DNA of 64,000 nt, from NCBI GenBank assembly GCA_028826165.1, contig JAPDFW010000120.1:1-64000 (forward strand). Reading direction: 5' to 3'. The translations under genes and the position numbers were made by a program. Numbering within the stretch: the stretch's first letter is position 1; the number at the start of each line of letters is the position of its first letter. The DNA comes from Anaeramoeba ignava BMAN (Eukaryota > Protista > Anaeramoebae). Below are positions 16,241 through 30,706 of the stretch, in pieces. A model generated the notes under the pieces. The model was not told the DNA's origin and did no database searches. It saw nothing but the letters and a program-made list of their open reading frames with translations.

Positions 16241-18042
16241 TTAATTTTGATTTTGATTTTGATTATTAAATTTGTTAATTAATAAATCAAATAAACTTGG
16301 ATTTGTTTGATTTAATTGAAAATAATCAATTCCAATTTTAATTTCATTAATTATTTCTTGTGTAATTTCAATTTCTTCTTTAATTTGATTTGAATAAATC
16401 CAATATTCAAATATTTGAAATGATTTATTACTTAATTCACTATAATCTGTAACTTTATTAGATTTATCTTCTGTAACAGATAAAAACATTCCTCGATATA
16501 ATTCACTTCTCATTATTAATATTAATTTTGGAAATTTATATTGTTTTTCTTTTCTTTCAATTATAAAATCATTTTCATTTTCATTTAAATAAATTCTTTT
16601 CATTGTTTCTTCAATTTTTTCATTTGAATTTATAATTTCTTTAATTTCAGAATATAATTTTGGATTTATTATTCTGTTTGAATAAATCATTTCAAATATT
16701 TGATTTGAATCTTTAATTGATCTATTTGAAATAATTTCTTGAAGTTTTTCAATTTGATTTTCATCTTTTAATCTATATTTCAATATTAATTTATGAGCTT
16801 CAATTATTTCTCCATTTTTGGTTTTAAATGAAATATCACAAAATTCTTTTCTTCTAAATAGTTTTATCAAATCTTCTTCAAGATTGGAAAAAGAAGGAGG
16901 AGAATAATAAAGAAATGATCTAGAAAATCCACAAGAAATATGATAATTGGAAACATCATCCATTAATTTAGGAAGTTCATCTTTAATTGGAATTGATTGG
17001 GCTTGATGATCATATCCTTGTTGTCCATGGACAAAACTTCCAAAACCCAACATTTCCCCATTTGTTGTTAATATCAAAGCATGACCATTTCCAACAGAAA
17101 ATTCACGAATATTATCCTTTGTTTCTATTAATTTAATTCCTGGTATTTGTGGATTTTTTCCTACTGAACTTGTTGAACCTCCACATAAATACAATTTCCT
17201 TTTTGGATCTTCATCTTCATTTTCAATCAACATTATTGAATAAGCCCATCCAGATTGAATATCAATTATTTTGCCTTTTGGAATATTTTGGATTTTGGTT
17301 AATTTTTCAATTTTGTAGCTGTATGTTCTTTTGATTCCAAGTTGGAACGATTTATTATATCCACATCCAAATAATTCTTGATTTGAATTTAAAAGAAAAA
17401 CATGATGTGAAGAATTTCCTGAAAATATTTTAGAAATATTTTTCATCATTAAAATTGGTTTTTCTGTTTTTGAAAGTGTTTTAGAATATAAACCAAGTTG
17501 GCCATCCACATTTGAACCAATTCCATAAACATTTTGATTTGAAGTTAATAAGTAAATTGAACGAGCTCCAGAAATAATATCTTCAATTATTCTATCATTT
17601 GTATCTTCAATTAATGATGAAATATTAATAAATTTATTTGGATTATTTGGATCAATATTTATTCCTTTGGCAAATACATTTCCTTCTATTGTTAAAATAG
17701 CTTCATTTTGTTCACCAACAGTTACTTTTTGAATATTTTCAATTTGGATTTTTCAGGATTTCGATTTGAATCATTTTCTTTTAAATATTCTATTGCTTTT
17801 CCATTTTTAAAAAGGAAAATTGTTGAATAATTTCCTGATGAAATTTGTTTAATTTGTTTTTCATTTTCATTTTCATTTTCAAATTTAAATTGAATTGGAT
17901 TTTTTATTCTTTCTGTTTCATTTTTGATAATAATTGGTTTATTATTCCAACCAAAAAACCAACACCCTTTCTTTCCAGAAGTAATTGAATAAATTGTTCT
18001 TATTTGTTTCAGTTTTGATCCTGTTTGTTTTCTTAATCTCAT
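16241..18042 (-). CDS. RCC1-repeat + tandem BTB protein (copy 2); 1-nt deletion near 17750
   Basis: Tandem paralogue of 14363-16158. BTB half nearly identical, RCC1 blades diverged. Confidence 0.88.
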
Positions 18043-18371: not shown

Positions 18372-20095
18372 ATGGACTTATTAAAATCCTCAAATGAATC
18401 CAATCCACAAAGAGAAACAAAGAAAAACCCAAGTATTTTTGAAAAAAACAAAAATGATCCATATTTTGATTTTTTCAATGATTTCGATAATGAAATTTCT
18501 TCACCTTCTTCATTTGGTAAAATTCAACATTAAAATCAAAATCAAAATCAAAATCAAAATCAAGATATAAATTAAAATTCAAAATTAAAATCAAAATCTA
18601 AATCAAAATTAAAATCAAAATCAAATTTAAAATTAAAATTCAACATTAAAATCAAAATCAAAATCAAAATCAAAATCAAAATCAAATTCAAAATATAAAT
18701 CAAAATCAAAATCAAAATCAAAATATAAATTAAAATCAAAATCAAAATCAAAATCAAAATCAAAATCAAAATCTAAATCAAATTTAAATTTAAAATTAAA
18801 ATTCAAATTTAAAATTAAAATTAAAATTAAAATTTAAAAATTTATTTTTCTTAGACAATTTCGATGATACAGATGATCCAAATTCTCCTTTTTTTCAAAA
18901 TTCTCCAAATTCTTTTTTTGATATTGATCCAAATCCTTTCAATTTTCTCAATGACTGGAAATCTCCATTTGATTCAAATGATACTAATTTTTCATTTCGT
19001 TTAGATTATCCAGACGAAACATTTGATTCAAATTTTAACATTTTTGAAGAAGATTTAAACAATTCAAACAATTTAAATGATTTAAACAATTCAAACAATT
19101 TAAATGATTCAAACAATTTAAATGATTCAAACAATTCAAAAGATTCAAATGATTTAGAAATGCTTCCTTTTAATAATTCTCAACATTTTTCCAATATCAA
19201 TTTCAATTCCAATTATCAATATTCACAAAAACAAAACGACCTACCCCCTAATATTAATTCGAATGATTCAAATCATTTTTTTTCGAAATCTCCAATTGCT
19301 CCTATTGGTTTGATTAAGAAAGGAAATGATTTGAATCATTCAATAACATTAGATAATTGTAATAATGATATCGATAATAATGTTGGAAATATTAAAGGAA
19401 TAACTTCTAAATCATTTCAAATTAATTCAAATCCAATTAATTCAAAATCAATTAATTCAAATCCAATTGATTCAAATTCAATTAATCCAAATTCAATCAA
19501 TTCAAATTCAATTGATTCAAATTCAATTGATTCAAAATCAATCAATCCAAATTCAATTGATTCAAAATCAATCAATCCAAAATCAATCAATCCAAAATCA
19601 ATCAATCTAAAAACAAAAAAAACAAGAAAAAAAAGAAGCAAAAAAAAGAAGCAAAAAGATCAATTAATTCAATCTCCAAAAAAAAGAAGAAACAGAAAAC
19701 CCAAAATTCCAAAATTACAAATCAATTCAGAAATCAAAAAACACTTTAAATCACATCAACCTTATGGAGAACGTTTAGATATTATTGCAAGAATTAGACC
19801 TGAATTAATTAAAGGATGGAAACCTTCAACTTTTCAAGATTTTCAAGAAAAAGGAATTGTTCCTGAAAAAGTTGAGATTATTCCAAATTTGATTGATTTT
19901 ATGACTCAATGTTTGAATAAAACAAATTTTGATGAATCATTAGAAATCACAGAAAATTTAAAGAAAACTTACCAAAGATCAAGAAAAAATATCAGGAAAT
20001 GTTTAATCAGATTTTTTAAAGATACAATCCAAATGAAAAAATCACCTGAAAGTGTTTATAATCATTCAAGCATGACTTTTTTAAGAAAGCATTAA
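18372..20095 (+). CDS. Array gene 1: acidic D/F-rich N-terminus, basic linker, conserved C-terminal domain (putative DNA-binding)
   Basis: Exon 1 18372-18516, phase-1 intron 18517-18854, exon 2 in frame with ORF 19160-20095. Domain GERLDIIARIRPELIKGWKPSTF...GIVPEKVEI. Confidence 0.8.
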
Positions 20096-20703
20096 GAATC
20101 TTCTTTTTTTCAATTTACTTCTTTTTTTTTTTTATCGTTTCGATTTTATTCGTTTTTTACTTTTTTTTTTTTAATTTCAATTTCATCTTTCTTTGTTTTG
20201 TTTATAAGGAAGAATTTTGGAATATCACAAATAAAATAAGAAATCTTCAAATCATTTTTTCTAATTAATTTTTTTCGCATTTTCCCTTTTTTTTTCTATT
20301 TAAATTTTTAATTAAATTTTGATTTGATCTTTTTAAATTAAATTTTCCTTTTTTTTTTTATTTAAATTTTAATTAAATTTGATTTGATCTTTTTAAATTA
20401 AAAAGTGGTTTTTTTTTTATTCCAATTTTTCCTTTTTTTTTTATTCCAATTTTCCTTTTTTTTTTAATTAAAAAAAAATGTGGTTTTTTTTTGCCCTCAT
20501 AAATAAAAATTTTTAATTAAATTTTTACATTTCTTTTTTTCCTTTTTTTAATTAAATTTTAAAAGCGGATATTTTTAAAATTTTTAAATAAACTTTTTTT
20601 TTTTTTTCAAATTCATTTTTCCTTTTCTTTTTCTTTTTAAAAATTCATTTTTTTTCTATTAAATAAAACAAAACAAAACAAAACAAAACAAAACAAACTT
20701 AAA

Positions 20704-22653
20704 ATGAAACATTCTTTTGATAATAATAACAACTTAAATTCCTTTCAAAACAACTCTATTGATGATTTTAATGAGGAAAACAACCAATTTTTTGATTATG
20801 ATCCTTTTGATTCTTTTTATGGTAAATAAATCAATTCAAATCAATTATTTTTACATTTTTGGATTATTTTAATTACATTTTAATTTAATTTAATTTAATT
20901 TAATTTAATTTAATTTAATTTAATTTAATTTAGATAATCCAAATGATTCACAATTTCAACAACAAAGAGTTGATGATTCCCATTCCTTTTTTAATCCTTT
21001 TGATTCTTTTTATGGTAAATTAAACAAATAATCAATTATTTTTACATTTTTGGGTTATTTTAATTTAATTTAATTTAATTTAATTTAATTTAGATAATTC
21101 AAATGATTTAGATAATTCAAATGATTCACAATTTCAACAACAACAAAAAAACGATTCTTTTGATCCAAATTCTGATCCTTTTGATTCTTTTTATGGTAAA
21201 TAAATCAATTCAAATCAAATAAAATAAAATCAATTATTTTTACATTTTTGGATTATTTTAATTTAATTTTATTTTAATTTAATTTAATTTAATTTAATTT
21301 AATTTTAATTTAATTTAATTTAATTTAATTTAGATAATCCAAATGATTCACAATTTCAACAACAAAGAGTTGATGATTCCCATTCCTTTTTTAATTCTTA
21401 TGATTCTTCTGATGGTAAATAAAAGAAAATCAAAAATTAATTCAATTTAATTGATTTAATTTATTTGATTTTAATTTAGATAATCTGAATTATTCACATT
21501 TTCAACAACAAGATGATGATCGTTTTGATTTTTTTGATTTTTTAGATGGTAAATAATTCAAACAAAAACTTAAATATATTTTTTTAACTTATTTTAAATA
21601 TAATTTGATTTAGATAATCCAAATATTCAAGACAATGATCCAATTTTTGATTTTTCATTTGATTCAAATTCTCCTTTTGATTCAGATAATTCAAAAACAC
21701 AAAATCAAATTCAATCACAAAATCAAATTCAATTACAAAATCAAATTCAAAATCAATATCAAAATCAATATCAATATTCTTCTAATTCGACTTCGAATAA
21801 TAAATTTAATTCATTAAATTCTAAAAACGATCTATCATCTAAAACGAATAATTCAGATTACTCAAATCATTTTCTTTCTAAATCATCAACTGCTCCTGTT
21901 GATTTGAATAAGAAAGAAAATGATAGTGGTAATCAAACACAAATTAATAATTCTATCGATAATAAAAAACAGAATATTGATATTGGTATTGATATTAAAG
22001 AAACAAAACAAATTAATTCACAACCCAAATCTAAATCCAAATCTAAATCCAAATCCAAATCTAAATTCAAATCCAATTCACAACCCAATTCCAAATCCAA
22101 ATCCAAATCCAAATATAAATCCAATTCACAACCCAATTCACAACCCAAATCCAAATCCAAATTAAATCCAAAAACAAAAAGAAAAACAAACAAAAAAAGA
22201 AAAAAGAATCAAAAAGAGAATTTGAATCAAGTGAAAAAATCAAAAAAAAGAAATCATCAGGTTTATATTCCAAATTTAAACATTAATTCAAAAGAACAAG
22301 AACTTTTTAACTCAAATCAAAGCATTGGAAAACGTTTGGATATTCTTGCAGAAATTAAACCCGATTTAATTAAAGGATGGGAATCTTCAACTTTTAAAAA
22401 TTTCCAAAAAAAAGGAATTATTCCAGAAAAAGTAATTATTCTTGGAGATGCTGTTCATTTTATGACTCAATGTTTGAAAATCACAAATTTTGATGAATTG
22501 AATAATCCAACACAAGAAATGAAAACAAATTATCAAAAATGGATCAAATATTTTGCAAGATCATTAAAAAGATTTTTAGAAAACACAATGAAGATGGAAA
22601 GAGACCAAGAAAACAAACACAAACATGGATTGATTATCTTTATCAAAAAATAA
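20704..22653 (+). CDS. Array gene 2: six exons, repeated acidic-aromatic exon modules plus conserved C-terminal domain
   Basis: Exons 20704-20821, 20934-21014, 21094-21195, 21334-21414, 21480-21548, 21614-22653. All junctions are G|GTAAAT...TTTAG|ATAAT and the frame is intact into ORF 21904-22653. Confidence 0.85.
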
Positions 22654-23261
22654 GACACCTTTTTATTCCGTTTTTTTAATTCCGTTATTTACGTTTGATT
22701 TACGTTTTATTTACGTTTTATTATCGACTTTATTATCGACTTTATTATCGACTTTATTTACTTTTTTATTTCGTTTCATTTTTTTGACTTTTTTTTGACT
22801 TTTTTTGACTTTTTTTTGAAATCAAATTTGATACAATTTGGTTAATATTTTTATTTATCATTTTGAATCAAATTCTTTTTTTTTACTTTTGTAAGGAAGA
22901 ATGTTGGAATCACACTAATAAAATTGGAAATCTTCAAACCTTTTTATTAAAACAAAACATTTTTAATTTTTAATTTTTAATTTTAATTTTTTAAATTAAA
23001 AAAAGTGGAATTTAATTTGTTTATTTTTTAAATAAAAAATTAAAAAAAATTTTGAAATAAAAAACCAAACAAAAAGAAGACTGTGATATTTTAATTTTTT
23101 TCCTTTTTTTTTTCTTTTTTCGATCATTTTTATATCATTTCTCAATTTTTTTTAAAAGTAGACAATTTAATATTTTTAAAAAAATTTTTTAATTATTCTT
23201 TTTTTCATTTTTTTTTTTAATAATTTTTTTTTAAATTGAACACACAAACCAAAATATAAAT

Positions 23262-26064
23262 ATGAAACAAAATATTAAACCAAATTTACATAAAAATCAA
23301 ATTCAAAATCAAATTCAATATCAATATCAATTTCAATATCACAATCAAATTTTAAATATGAATCAAAATCAAATTCTATATAGAATTATTTTTGAAATTA
23401 AATCCCCAATTCAAAATCAAAATCAATATCAAAATCAGAATATAAATCAAATTGAAAATCAAATTATAAATCAAATTGAAAATGAAATTATAAATCAAAA
23501 TCAAAATGAAATTATAAATCTAAATCAAAATCAAAATATAAATCAAAATGAAAATCAAAATCAAAATCAAAATGAAAATGAAAATATAAATCAAAATCAA
23601 AATCAAAATCAAATTCAAATTGATAATATAAATCAAAATCTAAATCAAAATGAAAATCAAAATATAAATCAAAATCAAAATCTAAATCTAAATCAAAATC
23701 AAAATGAAAATATAAATCAAAATCAAAATCAAAATCAATATCAAATTGAAAATATAAATCAATATCAAAATCAAATTCAAAATCAAATTGAATATCTAAA
23801 TCAAAATCTAAATCAAAATCAAAATCAAAATCAAAATCAAAATAATCAAAATCAAAATCAAAATCAAAATCAAAATCAAAATCTAAATGAAAATCAAAAT
23901 CAAAATGAAAATCAAAATCAAAATCAAAATCAAAATCAAAATCAATATCAAAATCAAATTCAAAATCAAAATGAATATCAAAATCAAAATCAAAATCAAA
24001 ATCAAAATATAAATCAAAATGAAAATCAAATTCAAATTGATAATATAAATCAAAATCTAAATCAAAATGAAATTGAATATCTAAATCAAAATCAAAATCA
24101 AAATCAAAATCAATATCAAATTGAAAATATAAATCAATATCAAAATCAAATTCAAAATCAAAATGAATATCAAAATCAAATTCAAAATCAAAATCAAAAT
24201 ATAAATCAATATCCAAATCAAAATCAAAATCAAAATCAAAATCAAATTCAAAATCAAATTCAAAATATAAATCAAAATCAAAATCAAAATATAAATCAAA
24301 ATCAAAATCAAAATCAAAATCAAAATCAAAATCAAAATCAAAATCAAAATCAAAATCAAAATCAAAATCAAAATGAAAATCAAAATCAAAATGAAAATCA
24401 AAATCATAATCAAAATCATAATCAAAATCAAAATCAAAATGAAATTGAATATCCAAATCAAAATCAAAATGAATATCCAAATCAAAATATAAATCAAAAT
24501 CAAAATATAAATCAAAATCCAAATCTAAATCAAAATCAAAATCAAAATCAAAATCAAAATCAAAATGAAAATCAAAATCAAATTGAAAATGAAATTGAAA
24601 TTGAAAATCTAAATCAAAATCAAAATCAAAATCAAAATCAAAATGAAATTGAATATCTAAATCAAAATCAAAATCAAAATCAAAATCAAAATCAAAATCA
24701 AAATCAAAATCAAAATCAAAATCAAAATCAAAATCAAAATCAAAATCAAAATCAAAATCAAAATCAAAATGAAATTGAATATCTAAATCAAAATCAAAAT
24801 CAAAATCTAAATCAAAATCTAAATCAAAATCAAAATCAAAATCAAAATCAAAATCAAAATCAAAATCAAAATCAAAATCAAAATCAATATCAATATCATA
24901 ATCAAAATCAAAATCAAAATGAAATTGAAAATCTAAATCAAAATCAAAATCAAAATCAAAATCAAAATCAAAATCAAAATCAAAATCAAAATCAAAATCA
25001 AAATCAAAATCAAAATCAAAATTGAATATCTAAATCAAAATAATCAAATAAATCAAAATCAAAATCAAAATCAAAATCAAAATATAAATCAAAACCAAAA
25101 TGAAATTGAATATCTAAATCAAAATAATCAAAATCAAAATAATCTAAATCAAAAAAATCTAAATCAAAATCAAAATCAAAATCAAAATCAAAATCAAAAT
25201 CAAAATCAAAATCAAAATCAAAATCAAAATGAATATCAATATCCTTTTCAATATTCTTCTATTTGGACATTATATACTAAATTAAATGAAAATTCATTAA
25301 ATTCTAAAAACGATCTATCATCTAAAACGAATAATTCAGATTACTCAAATCATTTTCTTTCTAAACCATCAACTACTTATGTTGATTTGAATAAGAAAGA
25401 AAGTGATATTGGTAATCAAACAAAATTTAATAATTCTATCAATAATATAAAAAAGAATATTGATAATGATACAGATATTCATATTGATATTGGTAATGAT
25501 ATTAAAGATAAAAAACAAATAAATTCAAAATCAAAACTCAAATCAAAAATCCAAATCAAAAATCAAATCAAATTAAATCCAAAAACAAAAAGAAAAACAA
25601 ACAACAAAAGAAAAAAGAATCAAAAAGAGAATTTGAATCAATTGAAAAAATCAAAATCAAGAAATAGAAAAATTTATATTCCAAATTTAAACATTAATTC
25701 AGAAGAAAAAGAACTTTTTAACTCAAATCAACTTATTGGAAAACGTTTAGATATTCTTGCAAAAATTAGACCTGATTTAATTAAAGGATGGAAATCTTCA
25801 ACTTTTAAATGTTTTAAAGAAAAAGGAATTATTCCAGAAAAAGTAATTATTCATGATGATGGATTTCATTTTATGGCTCAATGTTTGGAAATTACAAATT
25901 TTGAAGAATTAAATAATCCAACACAAGAAATGAAATTAAAATATCAAAAATTTCAAAAAAATTACAAAAGATCATTACAGAAATTTTTACAAAACACAAT
26001 GAAAATGAAAAGAATTAAAACTAATGGAAAACAACACCAACCAATTATCTTTATCAAAAAATAA
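23262..26064 (+). CDS. Array gene 3: ~600-aa Q/N tract plus conserved C-terminal domain; slip near 25020
   Basis: ORF 23262-25025 continues after an indel into the frame of ORF 25387-26064 (GKRLDILAKIRPDLIKGWKSSTF). Confidence 0.7.
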
Positions 26065-26598
26065 GACACATTTTTATTCCGTTATTTAATTCCATTATTT
26101 ATCATTTTATTTCAAATTTTCCACTTTTTTTTTACTTTTGTTTATAAGGAAGAATTTTGGAATATCACAAATAAAATAAGAAATCTTCAATCATTTTATT
26201 TAAAACAAAACATTTTTCCCTTTTTATTATTTAAATTTTTTTATTCGCATTTTTCCTTTTTTTCTTATTTAAATTTTCCTTTTTTTTTTATTCCAATTTT
26301 CCTTTTTTCCTTTTTTTTTTAATTAAATTTTGATTTGATCTTTTTAATTAAAAAAAAATGTGGTTTTTTTTGCCCTCATAAATAAAAATTTTAAATAAAT
26401 TTTTACATTTCTTTTTTTCCTTTTTTTAATTAAATTTTAAAAGGAGATATGTTTGCCCTCAAATAAAATTTTTAAATAAACTTTTTTTTTTTTTTCAAAT
26501 TCATTTTTCCTTTTCTTTTTCTTTTTAAAAATTATTTTTTTTCTATAAAACAAAACAAAACAAAACAAAACAAAAAAACAAAACAAAACAAACTTAAA

Positions 26599-28472
26599 AT
26601 GAAACATTCTTTTGATAATAACAACTTAAATCCCTTTCAAAACAATTCCATTGATGATTTTAATGAGGAAAACAACCAATTTTTTGATGTTCCTTTTGAT
26701 TCTTTTTTTGGTAAATTAAACAATTCAAATCAATTATTTTTACATTTTTGGATTATTTTAATTACATTTTAATTACATTTTAATTTGATTTAATTTAATT
26801 TAATTTAATTTAATTTAATTTAATTTAGATAATCCAAATGATTCTTTTTCTGATTCTTTTTATGGTAAATAAATTTCAACAACAAAGAGTTGATGGTTCC
26901 CATTCCTTTTTTAATTCTTTTGATTCTTTTTATGGTAAATAAATCAATTCAAATCAATTATTTTTACATTTTTGGATTATTTTAATTTATTTTAATTACA
27001 TTTTAATTTGATTTAATTTAATTTAATTTAATTTAATTTAATTTAGATAATCCAAATGATTCACAATTTCAACAACAAAGAGTTGATGATTCCCATTCCT
27101 TTTTTAATTATTCTGATTCTTCTGATGGTAAATAAAAGAAAATCAAAAGTTAATTCAATTTAATTGATTTAATTTAATTGATTTTAATTTAGATAATCTG
27201 AATTATTCACATTTTCAACAACAAGATGATGATCGTTCTGATTTTTTAGATTTTTTAGATGGTAAATAATTCAAACAAAAACTTAAATATATTTTTTTAA
27301 TTTATTTTAAAATTAATTTGATTTAGATAATCCAAATATTCAAGACAATGATCCAATTTTTGATTTTTCATTTGATTCAAATTCTCCTTTTGATTCAGAT
27401 AATTCAAAAACACAAAATTGAAATTCAAAATCAAATTCAAAATTTTCAAAAATCAAATCTTCAATATACAAAATCAAAATCAAAATTGAAAAAGAAAATC
27501 AAAATCAAAATCAAATCAAAATCAAAATCAAAATCAAAATCAAAATCAAATTCAGAAATTTCAAAATCAAAATCAAAAAATCAAAATCAAAATCAAAATC
27601 AAAAATCAAAATCAATATTCTTCTAAAATCAAAATCTTCGAAAAATCAAAATGAAAATCAAATCAAAATCAAAATCAAAATAATCAAAAATCAAAATTTT
27701 AAAAACGATCTATCATCTAAAACGAATAATAAATTCAAATCATTAAATTTTTTTTCTTTTCTAAATCATCATCAAAATCATTTTGCTCCTGTTGATTTGA
27801 TTGAGAAAGAAAATGATTTTGGTAATCAAACACAAATTAATAATTCTATCGATAATAAAAAAAAGAATATTGATAATGATATTGATTTTGGTTTTGATCT
27901 TGATTTTGATAATGATATTGGTAATGATATTAAAGATACAAAACAAATTAATTCGCAACCCAAATCTAAATCCAAATCCAAATTAAATCCAAAAACAAAA
28001 AGAAAAACAAACAAAAAGAAAAAAGAATCAAAAAGAGAATTTGAATCAATTGAAAAAATCAAAATCAAGAAATAGAAAAATTTATATTCCAAATTTAAAC
28101 ATTAAACCAGAAGAAAAAGAACTTTTTAACTCAAATCAACTTATTGGAAAACGTTTAGATATTCTTGCAAAAATTAGACCTGATTTAATTAAAGGATGGA
28201 AATCTTCAACTTTTAAATGTTTTAAAAAAAAAGGAATTATTCCAGAAAAAGTAATTATTCATGATGATGGATTTCATTTTATGGCTCAATGTTTGGAAAT
28301 TACAAATTTTGAAGAATTAAATAATCCAACACAAGAAATGAAATTAAAATATCAAAAATTTATAAAAAATTACAAAAGATCTTTACAAAAATTTTTACAA
28401 AACACAATGAAAATGAAAAGAATTAAAACTAATGGAAAACAACACCAACCAATTATCTTTATCAAAAAATAA
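26599..28472 (+). CDS. Array gene 4: exon-module N-terminus like gene 2, C-terminal domain nearly identical to gene 3; garbled middle (assembly noise or decaying gene)
   Basis: Exons 26599-26710, 26829-26864, 27047-27127, 27193-27261, 27327-28472. Frameshifts in 27420-27790 and near 28020. Confidence 0.65.
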
Positions 28473-28949
28473 GACACCTCCGTTATTTAATTCCGTTATT
28501 TAATCCCGTTATTTAATTCCGTTATTTACGTTTTATTATCGACTTTATTATCGACTTTATTTACTTTTTATTTCGTTTCCATTTTTTTGACTTTTTTTTG
28601 ACTTTTTTTTGACTTCAAATTTGATACAATTTGGTTAATATTTTTATTTATCAAATTGAATCAAATTCTTTTTTTTTACTTTTGTAAGGAAGAATGTTGG
28701 AATCACACTAATAAAATTGGAAATCTTCAAACTTTTTATTAAAACAAAACATTTTTAATTTTTAATTTTATTAAAAAAAAGATTAGGAAAAAAAAATTTT
28801 GAAATAAATAAATCGGACAATTTCTTTTTTTTCCTTTTTTTTCCTTTTTTTAATTTAAAATTAGATAAAATGGATAATTTATCATTTTTAAATTTAAATT
28901 TTTTCCTTTTTCTTTTTCACTTTTTTTTATTCACTTTTTATTTATTATT

Positions 28950-30706
28950 ATGGATCTTCCATTTCATTCATTTCAAAACAAACAACAAAATAATTTTATC
29001 GATCCAATTACTTCATTTATTGATAGTGTTTTCAATTCTTTTTTTATTCAAAACGAAAACCAAATTCAAAATCAAAATCAAAATCAAAATCAAAATCAAA
29101 ATCAAAATCAAAATCAAAATGAAAATATAAATCAAAATCAAAATCAAATTCAAAATCAAAATCAAAATGAAAATATAAATCAAAATCTAAATCAAAATCA
29201 AAATCAAAATCAAAATCAAAATCAAAATCAAAATCAAATTCAAAATCAAAATCAAAATCAAAATCAAAATCAAAATGAAAATATAAATCAAAATCAAAAT
29301 CAAAATCAAAATCAAAATCAAAATCAAAATCAAAATCTAAATGAAAATCAAAATCAAATTCAAAATCAAAATCAAAATCAAAATCAAAACCAAAATCAAA
29401 ATCAAAATAAAAATATAAATCAAAATCAAAATCAAAATCAAAATCAAAATCAAAATCAAAATCAAAATCTAAATGAAAATCAAAATCAAATTCAAAATCA
29501 AAATCAAAATCAAAATCTAAATCAAAATCAAAATCAAAATCAAAATCAAAATCAAAATCAAAATCAAAATCAAAACCAAAATCAAAACCAAAATCAAAAT
29601 CAAAATCAAAATCAAAATCAAAATCAAAATCAAAATCAAAATCAAAATCAAAATCAAATTCAAAATCAAAATCAAAATCAAAATCAAAATCAAAATCAAA
29701 ATCAAAATCAAAATCAAAATCAAAATCAAAATCAATATCAAAATCAAATTCAAAATCAAAATCAAAATCAAAATCAAAATCAAAATCAAAATCAAAATCA
29801 AAATCAAAATCAAAATCAAAATATAAATATAAATCAAAATCAAAATCAAAATCAAAATATAAATATAAATCAAATTCAAAATCAAAATCAAAATCAAAAT
29901 CAAAATAAAAATATAAATCAAAATCAAAATCAATATCAAAATCAAAACCAAAACCAAAATCAAAATCAAAATGAAAATATAAATCAAAATCAAATTCAAA
30001 ATCAAAATCAAAATCAAAATCAAAATCAAAATCAATATCAAAATCAAATTCAAAATCAAAATCAAAATCAATCTGAAGCTTTTCCACTTTTAAAAATTTA
30101 TACACCTCTATTATATCATCCTTTTTACTTGATTAAAAAAGATATGCCAAAAATTGAAGTTTTCTCTGATCATTCTCAAAAATTCCAAATTCCCAAAAAT
30201 AAAAAAGATTTCTTTGATCAAATTTTTAAAAAAAAGAATGAAAATTATTATTCCAATCATTTAAATCAAACAAATTCAAGAAAAAAAAAGCGAATTTCAA
30301 TTTCAAATTCAAATATTAAAAAATCAAAATTTAAAAAATCAAATATCAAAAATCCAAATTATTTTTCACACATCAATCTATTGGAGAACGTCTTGATATT
30401 ATTGCTAAAATTCATCCTGAATTGATTAGAGGTTGGACTCCTTCTACTTATCATGATTTCAAACAATCAAATATTATTCCTTCAAAAGTGGAAATTGATT
30501 TAAAAATTATCGATTTTATTGATAAAAATATTCAAAGAAAAGAAAACAAAAATCCTTTATTAAAAGAAAAGAAAACAAAAAATAAACCAAAATATGATCT
30601 TCGCAAAACAATTCCAAGATTTTTTGATTCAACTTTGAAAATGATTCCACATCAAAAAAATAAAGGTAATAGAGAAAGATTAATATTCACAAAACAAAAG
30701 GAATGA
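28950..30706 (+). CDS. Array gene 5 (most divergent): short F/D leader, Q/N tract, conserved C-terminal domain; one slip before 30370
   Basis: The alternate frame at 30371 reads HQSIGERLDIIAKIHPELIRGWTPSTYHDFKQSNIIPSKVEI, continuous with ORF 30422-30706. Confidence 0.75.

Follow-up and report, generated by a model that had tools for sequence, protein, structure and literature searches.

An array of five genes sharing a C-terminal domain

The window analyzed in this work, a 64-kb stretch of very A+T-rich DNA (about 20% G+C) from Anaeramoeba ignava, carries at 18372-30706, on the + strand, five genes that are all closed by the same domain of about 115 amino acids (aa), and the question raised by this locus is what kind of proteins such an array encodes. 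The origin from this species is borne out by paralogs located outside the window, since proteins identical to them have A. ignava accessions. An earlier inspection of the letters (the sequence-only reading) had proposed a new, lineage-specific family of winged-helix transcription factors. Our analyses make it fairly probable, though by no means certain, that the array is a tandem cluster of an Anaeramoeba-specific family of nuclear, sequence-specific DNA-binding proteins, for which we infer DNA binding, nuclear location and transcriptional activation.

A profile built from the five copies was searched against the six-frame translation of the 42.8-Mb assembly and returned the array domains with E values from 5.8e-65 to 4.0e-47. 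All five copies were found on the + strand, thus bearing out the claim of five same-strand genes with a common C-terminal domain; the set itself had to be qualified, as only genes 1 and 2 are clean open reading frames (ORFs) and the array belongs to a family for which the genome gives some 50 matches in six-frame translation. The domains of the other array genes show 32-47% identity to that of gene 1; genes 3 and 4 have domains that are the same except at 5 of 126 residues. The motif described earlier, G[KE]RLDI..A.I.P[DE]LI.GW..ST[FY] ... F..K, reads as stated in the array domains, and the linker resembling a nuclear localization signal (NLS) is present ahead of each of them as a K/R-rich segment with 28-44% K+R.

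The encoded proteins would have a modular layout, with a disordered N-terminus (acidic/aromatic repeats, Q/N- or Q/P-rich), a K/R-rich NLS-like linker and a C-terminal winged helix-turn-helix of about 115 aa. Acidic/aromatic or Q/P-rich N-termini occur in the long A. ignava members of the family, and the combination of an acidic/aromatic or Q-rich N-terminus with a K/R linker was also observed in the unlinked paralogs P0001, P0002, P0004 and P0005.

Predicted fold and structure searches

The structure of the domain was modeled with AlphaFold2 on two members belonging to different subfamilies. Model 1 (gene 1 domain with 27 paralogs, mf989f38b2171) showed a predicted local distance difference test score (pLDDT) of 89.5 and a predicted template modeling score (pTM) of 0.83, while model 2, corresponding to residues 322-445 of the unlinked protein P0001 and calculated with 51 sequences, reached a pLDDT of 95.5 and a pTM of 0.87. 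Both models display the topology a1-b1-(a)-b2-a2-a3-b3-b4 of the ETS/IRF/IBD class, IBD being the initiator-binding domain. Each begins with a short helix at the N-terminus, which is followed by a1, by a short strand at the invariant G-W and by an additional helix; b2, a2, a basic loop and a long a3 come next, and a b3-b4 hairpin comes last. DSSP assigned helices to residues 21-31, (43-50), 62-71 and 78-100 and strands to residues 36-37, 56-60, 102-104 and 112-117. The order of elements called earlier from the sequence (helix, GW strand, strand, helix, long basic helix, beta-wing) is the same in both models, and the winged-helix call is therefore supported at the level of prediction.

The two models were compared by VIA-align, in an unbiased search, with 48,161 representative PDB chains, among which the hit at rank 50 has a Z of about 3. 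For model 1 the first match was the IBD of the protein IBP39 (1pp8; Z 5.5, 84 residues aligned), together with IRF7/3 at Z 5.5, and was followed by ETV4, ELF2, ETV1 and ELF1 at Z 5.0-5.1, with HSF at 3.3-3.7; Z values below 8 in this program can mean a common arrangement. The top 14 rows were all IBD, IRF or ETS domains. Model 2 again retrieved 1pp8 first (Z 5.2, 87 of 111 residues aligned), then ETV4 (5.1), ETV1 (4.9) and the IRFs (4.5); the same class filled 14 of the 16 top rows, the other two being NuoE-type chains. Foldseek returned IRF7 as best match of model 1 (E 0.55) and IBP39 (1pp7) as best match of model 2 (E 0.47). Overall, the IBD came first in three of the four structure searches, with IBD, IRF and ETS lying within 1 Z unit of each other. 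The argument for a winged-helix fold is thus carried by the coherence of the hit lists and not by any single score. The fold set named by the sequence-only reading, ETS, IRF and IBD with HSF, was recovered by the searches, with HSF ranking lower. Shape and feature searches in the ESM Atlas were uninformative, with one HSF row at a template modeling score of 0.43.

Charge, conservation and the putative recognition helix

The residues expected at a DNA interface were evaluated on the 51 members of the family alignment. The domain is strongly basic, its net charge ranging from +7 to +25 (median +14). Conserved positions include R24 on a1 (88%), G38-W39 (94-98%), P54, Y108, R/H110 and F115, and helix 3 bears a near-invariant (K/R)-N/S-x-(R/Q)-R-G motif, with R90 at 86% and K/R there at 96%. 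Lysine or arginine occupies positions 83, 86, 89, 98, 110 and 117 in at least 60% of the members. The best-conserved basic residues are located on helix 3 and on the wing, the DNA-contact elements of the ETS/IRF/IBD class, a pattern that would be expected if a3 were the recognition helix and the wing lay on the backbone. In the resulting model, the long basic helix 3 would enter the major groove with its (K/R)-N/S-x-(R/Q)-R-G motif, the b3-b4 wing, through its conserved Y-x-R/H, and helix 1, through Arg24, would make backbone contacts, and the N-terminal region might recruit the transcription machinery. The variation of helix 3 among the array genes that had been noticed earlier is real, as the R89-R90 positions read RK, AR, KR, KR and RK in the five genes; that it directs the proteins to different targets is speculation.

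An alternative, which we consider improbable, is that this winged-helix-like domain does not read DNA sequence and binds RNA, chromatin/histones or protein partners, so that the proteins are not transcription factors. The modest Z values leave room for it, and further down both hit lists stand kleisin-SMC, Stn1, ORC/Cdt1 and PCI domains, winged helices of non-specific or protein-binding type; RNA-binding and chromatin proteins, too, typically have a high positive charge. However, sequence-specific DNA-binding domains of one class dominate the top rows for both models, the most conserved basic residues are those of helix 3 and the wing, and the activation-like N-terminus with its NLS-like linker fits a transcription factor.

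Comparison with known families

As the structural neighbors belong to well-characterized families, the domain was also compared with them by profile methods. Pfam matches to the domain were absent from all 51 members, and Pfam scans of the five array proteins, of two sets of domain sequences (27 and 51) and of ten paralogs at full length gave no family common to more than one member. Sequence-profile searches of the PDB with the family profile returned nothing below E 0.1. The claim of a new family holds, given these results and the finding of homologs in Anaeramoeba only (see below): the sequence family is real and so far undescribed, and its fold class is known.

The ETS domains (PF00178; ETV4 4co8, ETV1 4avp, ELF1/2), which are metazoan, share with the Anaeramoeba domain the a1-b1-b2-a2-a3-b3-b4 order (Z 4.9-5.1), an invariant Trp at the first strand and a helix 3 that bears Arg, with a G/aromatic strand and the wing after it, and their DNA-binding domain is often C-terminal with activation regions at the N-terminus. 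In contrast, the LSRALRYYY-type signature of helix 3 is absent from the Anaeramoeba domain, which has an extra N-terminal helix and an extra helix in the b1-b2 connection; the PF00178 profile gave no hit in the members, and no ETS chain appeared in the PDB profile searches. The metazoan or viral IRF domains (PF00605; IRF3/7 2o61, IRF4, vIRF-1) belong to the same winged helix-turn-helix class (Z 4.2-5.5); their conserved tryptophan pentad is missing, with only W39 invariant in the Anaeramoeba domain, and the PF00605 profile found no hit in the 51 members. HSF (PF00447) has the same topology with weaker structural matches (Z 3.2-3.7), and its recognition helix followed by G-aromatic-x-K/N resembles the RG..F[LF]...G[YL].N of Anaeramoeba; unlike HSF, no adjacent coiled-coil trimerization region was seen in the Anaeramoeba proteins, and PF00447 gave no hit in the 51 members. 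When PF00447 was run against the six-frame A. ignava genome no candidate was found, in a first look that may have missed one. If this absence is real, A. ignava would be without a canonical heat-shock factor.

The best structural neighbor of both models by VIA-align is the IBD of Trichomonas vaginalis IBP39 (1pp7/1pp8; PF10416), an ETS-like winged-helix scaffold belonging to a lineage-specific expanded family. IBP39 recognizes the initiator element and makes contact with the RNA polymerase II C-terminal domain (PMC5366954). A rival explanation for the array, which we hold to be rather unlikely, is that its domain is a very divergent IBD, inherited from the ancestor shared by Parabasalia and Anaeramoebae and relocated to the C-terminal end with its DNA binding kept. 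The ranking of IBP39 in the structure searches agrees with it, as does the extent of the alignment, which runs from end to end of the domain and takes in the extra helix at the N-terminus (model residues 1-119), ETS alignments beginning at residues 12-18. Both families are large lineage-specific expansions, that of the IBD in T. vaginalis. Anaeramoebae branch as sister to Parabasalia (PMC11267458). On the other side, the PF10416 hidden Markov model (HMM) gave no hit at E<=10 on the 51 members (Pfam cut-off 25 bits) and nothing at the same threshold on the six-frame A. ignava genome, a result that is no proof of absence. The family profile misses 1pp7 and 1pp8 at E<=10, no parabasalid protein was present among the 30 hits traced from the HMMER search of 1.84 billion proteins, and the near-tie of IBD, IRF and ETS within 1 Z unit does not single out the IBD. 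The domain is C-terminal in Anaeramoeba and N-terminal in IBP39.

Further differences from the IBD concern sequence and architecture. There is no detectable sequence or profile similarity, identity in the structural alignment being 10-13%, and the Anaeramoeba domain has one more short helix, placed between b1 and b2, while its helix 3 is longer. Its partner regions are acidic/aromatic or Q/N-rich, with no equivalent of the IBP39 C domain, the C-terminal place being taken by the winged helix itself. The broader proposal that the family is a true Anaeramoeba homolog of the parabasalid IBD, with IBD-type factors inherited from the common ancestor and expanded independently as the main specific transcription-factor family of each lineage, is likewise tentative and, in our opinion, doubtful. 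If this were the case, one Anaeramoeba member might be a core-promoter (initiator) reader, and the IBD would represent an ancient metamonad invention and no Trichomonas oddity. With the IBP39 IBD as best structural neighbor, the origin of that unusual core-promoter factor becomes testable by comparison.

Family size, distribution and expansion

On the A. ignava genome, a 51-sequence profile yielded 50 six-frame domain matches (E<=0.001), spread over about 35 contigs. Of these, the majority are contained in single open exons, with a few being broken; the array at 18372-30706 is the only five-gene cluster among them, and in nearly every family ORF the domain is located at the extreme C-terminus. 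An exhaustive HMMER profile search of 1.84 billion representative proteins produced 35 hits, of which 30 were traced: 29 came from A. ignava or Anaeramoeba flamelloides and one was metagenomic. A word-indexed search with full-length alignment, covering 5.8 billion proteins, returned Anaeramoeba proteins only. The lineage-specific character claimed for the family is supported by these searches. The metagenomic hit, the ENA metagenome repeat protein P0016, was judged spurious, as it matches profile positions 39-86 only, five times over.

The maximum-likelihood tree placed all 18 A. flamelloides representatives in one clade (support 98/92) and joined the array genes and the unlinked genes of contigs C9 and C128 in another (98/92). 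Gene 4, near-identical to gene 3, was omitted from the tree together with the broken copies L011/L027 and L013 and with L020, the same protein as P0001. The A. flamelloides clade and the grouping of array genes with unlinked ones indicate species-specific expansion and dispersal of array copies. Complete ORFs of P0002, P0004, P0010, P0013 and P0014 occur in the transcriptome-derived EukProt sets, and the family is therefore expressed, as judged from these members and not from the array genes.

A short-form subfamily of 157-263 aa was also observed, comprising P0009-P0035 in A. flamelloides and P0010, P0012, P0013, P0015 and P0024 in A. ignava. Its members show a conserved N-terminal helix (roughly E..x.LL.LK), then a low-complexity spacer and the domain; this helix, possibly a partner-binding motif, is absent from the five array genes.

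The traced Anaeramoeba members are named "hypothetical" or bear unrelated automatic names. The latter, found among P0001, P0020, P0018, P0024, P0028, P0032 and P0037, include m7GpppN-mRNA hydrolase, LAGLIDADG homing endonuclease and metallophosphoesterase, as well as ribosomal protein S3 or S7 and SH3 domain-binding glutamic acid-rich-like protein. These names found no Pfam support in full-length P0001 and P0020 or in the domain parts of P0018, P0024, P0028 and P0032. A transposon or viral origin was set aside, since identity of the copies to the reference sequences is 20-45%, their N-termini differ and two species share the domain; no transposase or other Pfam domain was detected in the family copies.

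Next to nothing is known of how genes are regulated in Anaeramoebae, free-living organisms that form the sister group of the trichomonads, and the term "transcription factor" is absent from the main text of the genome paper (PMC11550330). A family of about 50 genes, confidently predicted to encode winged helices, laid out like transcription factors and expanded species by species, represents a concrete candidate for their main lineage-specific regulator family, and its small domains, predicted to fold well, are suited to DNA-binding assays. The interpretation of the array as a cluster of sequence-specific DNA-binding proteins is favored by the species-specific expansions, which are usual in transcription-factor families. 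Several points weigh against it. The structural scores (Z 5.2-5.5, Foldseek E about 0.5) are below the levels that the tools call safe, and no profile match to Ets, IRF, HSF or IBD was obtained. Three of the five array genes (3, 4 and 5) are non-intact ORFs in this assembly. Finally, the ratio of nonsynonymous to synonymous substitution rates (dN/dS) between array copies is high, 0.53-1.05, a value that is hard to read because 80% A+T compresses the synonymous rate and that would indicate at most relaxed or diversifying evolution.

Gene models and history of the array

The features of the array are collected in Table 1.

Table 1. Features of the five-gene array, with positions in the 64-kb window and the part occupied by the common domain.
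Feature	Position	Strand	Domain	Description
Gene 1 exon 1	18372-18516	+		ATG, acidic/aromatic N-terminus; ORF ends at G/GTAAAA donor
Gene 1 intron	18517-18854	+		GT..AG; donor gtaaaa, acceptor ttcttag; filled with (AAAATC)n
Gene 1 exon 2	18855-20095	+	19715-20095 (E 7e-60)	Acidic/aromatic and N/S-rich region; K/R linker at about 19607-19714
Gene 2	20704-22653	+	22276-22653 (E 2.1e-62)	Six exons: 20704-20821, 20934-21014, 21094-21195, 21334-21414, 21480-21548, 21614-22653
Q/N-rich ORF before gene 3	23262-25025	+		ATG-started; about 1.8 kb of (CAAAAT)n-like repeat; frame differs from gene 3 domain
Gene 3 open frame	24937-26064	+	25687-26064	Linker and domain; public model P0070, 157 aa
Gene 4	26599-28472	+	28095-28472 (intact)	Full duplicate of the gene 2 unit
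Gene 5 N-terminal ORF	28950-30425	+		ATG at 28950; short aromatic start, Q/N hexamer repeat of about 380 aa, K-rich linker
Gene 5 domain	30332-30706	+	30332-30706 (E 4e-47)	Frame differs from N-terminal ORF; public model P0034, 67-aa fragment

For genes 1 and 2, joining of the exons served solely to test the reading frame, and unspliced sequence was used for the database searches. Joining the two exons of gene 1 gave a single ORF of 461 aa, and the six exons of gene 2 an ORF of 496 aa. Exons 2-5 of gene 2 are phase-1 symmetric cassettes of 69-102 nucleotides (nt), each with its own intron of about 65-140 nt; they encode acidic/aromatic repeats that each close with an F/Y-rich acidic motif such as ..DPFDSFY, and all junctions read G/gtaaat...atttag/AT. 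Tandemly duplicated exon-plus-intron cassettes of this kind build the N-terminal region in gene 2 (20704-21613) and in gene 4 (26599 to about 27280), and none were found upstream of gene 3, between 22654 and 23262.

The gene 2 unit (20144-22900) is repeated at 26072-28693, corresponding to gene 4, with 76-80% nt identity. In gene 3 the copy is confined to the 3' part of the unit (25160-26112, 78% nt identity), and gene 1 is 70% identical to it over the last exon. This recurrence of the gene 2 unit, in whole or in part, indicates that the array was built by serial tandem duplication.

In genes 3-5 the domain itself is intact and is preceded by frame breaks or a stop. No ATG occurs ahead of the gene 3 domain in its own frame. 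An in-frame stop interrupts gene 4 at 27419-27421, and its A-rich linker near 28010-28040 is 2 nt shorter than that of gene 3, resulting in a frame shift; this gene probably represents either a young pseudogene or an error of the assembly. In gene 5 the frame changes between about 30326 and about 30350, within A-rich runs. The A. ignava assembly was obtained from Nanopore R9.4 reads with two rounds of Pilon polishing (PMC11550330), and the frame breaks may therefore be either errors or real.

It is quite possible, if short of probable, that genes 3, 4 and 5 are young pseudogenes generated by tandem duplication and microsatellite expansion and that only genes 1 and 2 are functional. Besides the frame breaks, the in-frame stop and the missing start codon, decay would account for the public annotation of genes 3-5, which consists of fragments of just 157, 141 and 67 aa, for the broken domain copies present elsewhere in the genome (C100:158233-158588 and C60:1379786-1380124) and for a dN/dS of 0.5-1.0 between array copies. 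Nevertheless, the three domains all remain open over about 120 codons in DNA of 80% A+T, where we estimate from base composition that a stop would occur by chance at about 1 codon in 10; the breaks sit in A-rich or hexamer-repeat DNA, and indel errors are plausible in a Nanopore R9.4 assembly with only two Pilon rounds. A search for contigs encoding the public gene 4 model gave no match.

These two broken copies lie outside the array. The one at C100:158233-158588 (L011/L027), interrupted by two TGA and one TAG, is a decayed near-copy of the intact C9 gene (L006). The copy at C60:1379786-1380124 (L013) contains one TAG and lies 1.5 kb from an intact paralog, thus forming a second small tandem pair.

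The hexamer repeat and the Q/N tracts

The same (AAAATC)n / (CAAAAT)n hexamer occurs at 18530-18840 within the gene 1 intron, at 23262-25025 in the Q/N region of gene 3 and at 29060-30070 in that of gene 5. The repeat is open in all three frames of the + strand, and long F/D and L/I ORFs are found on the - strand too. Since all three sense frames are open, an open frame is weak evidence that the Q/N tracts are coding. An interpretation of the gene 5 tract as an intron was unsupported, as there are no flanking GT..AG signals and both flanks are in one frame, and coding is not proven either. The N-termini had been described as acidic/aromatic or Q/N-rich: the acidic/aromatic type holds for genes 1, 2 and 4 and Q/N tracts are indeed present in genes 3 and 5, with their coding status unproven. 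The idea of interchangeable activation domains is weakened, as the Q/N tracts correspond to a hexamer microsatellite that is found across the genome, and as three of the five array members lack an intact ORF in the assembly.

On the opposite strand, immediately upstream of the array, positions 16241-17509 (-) contain a gene for a protein with RCC1 repeats and a BTB domain (Pfam RCC1-like 2e-18, BTB 3.4e-10).

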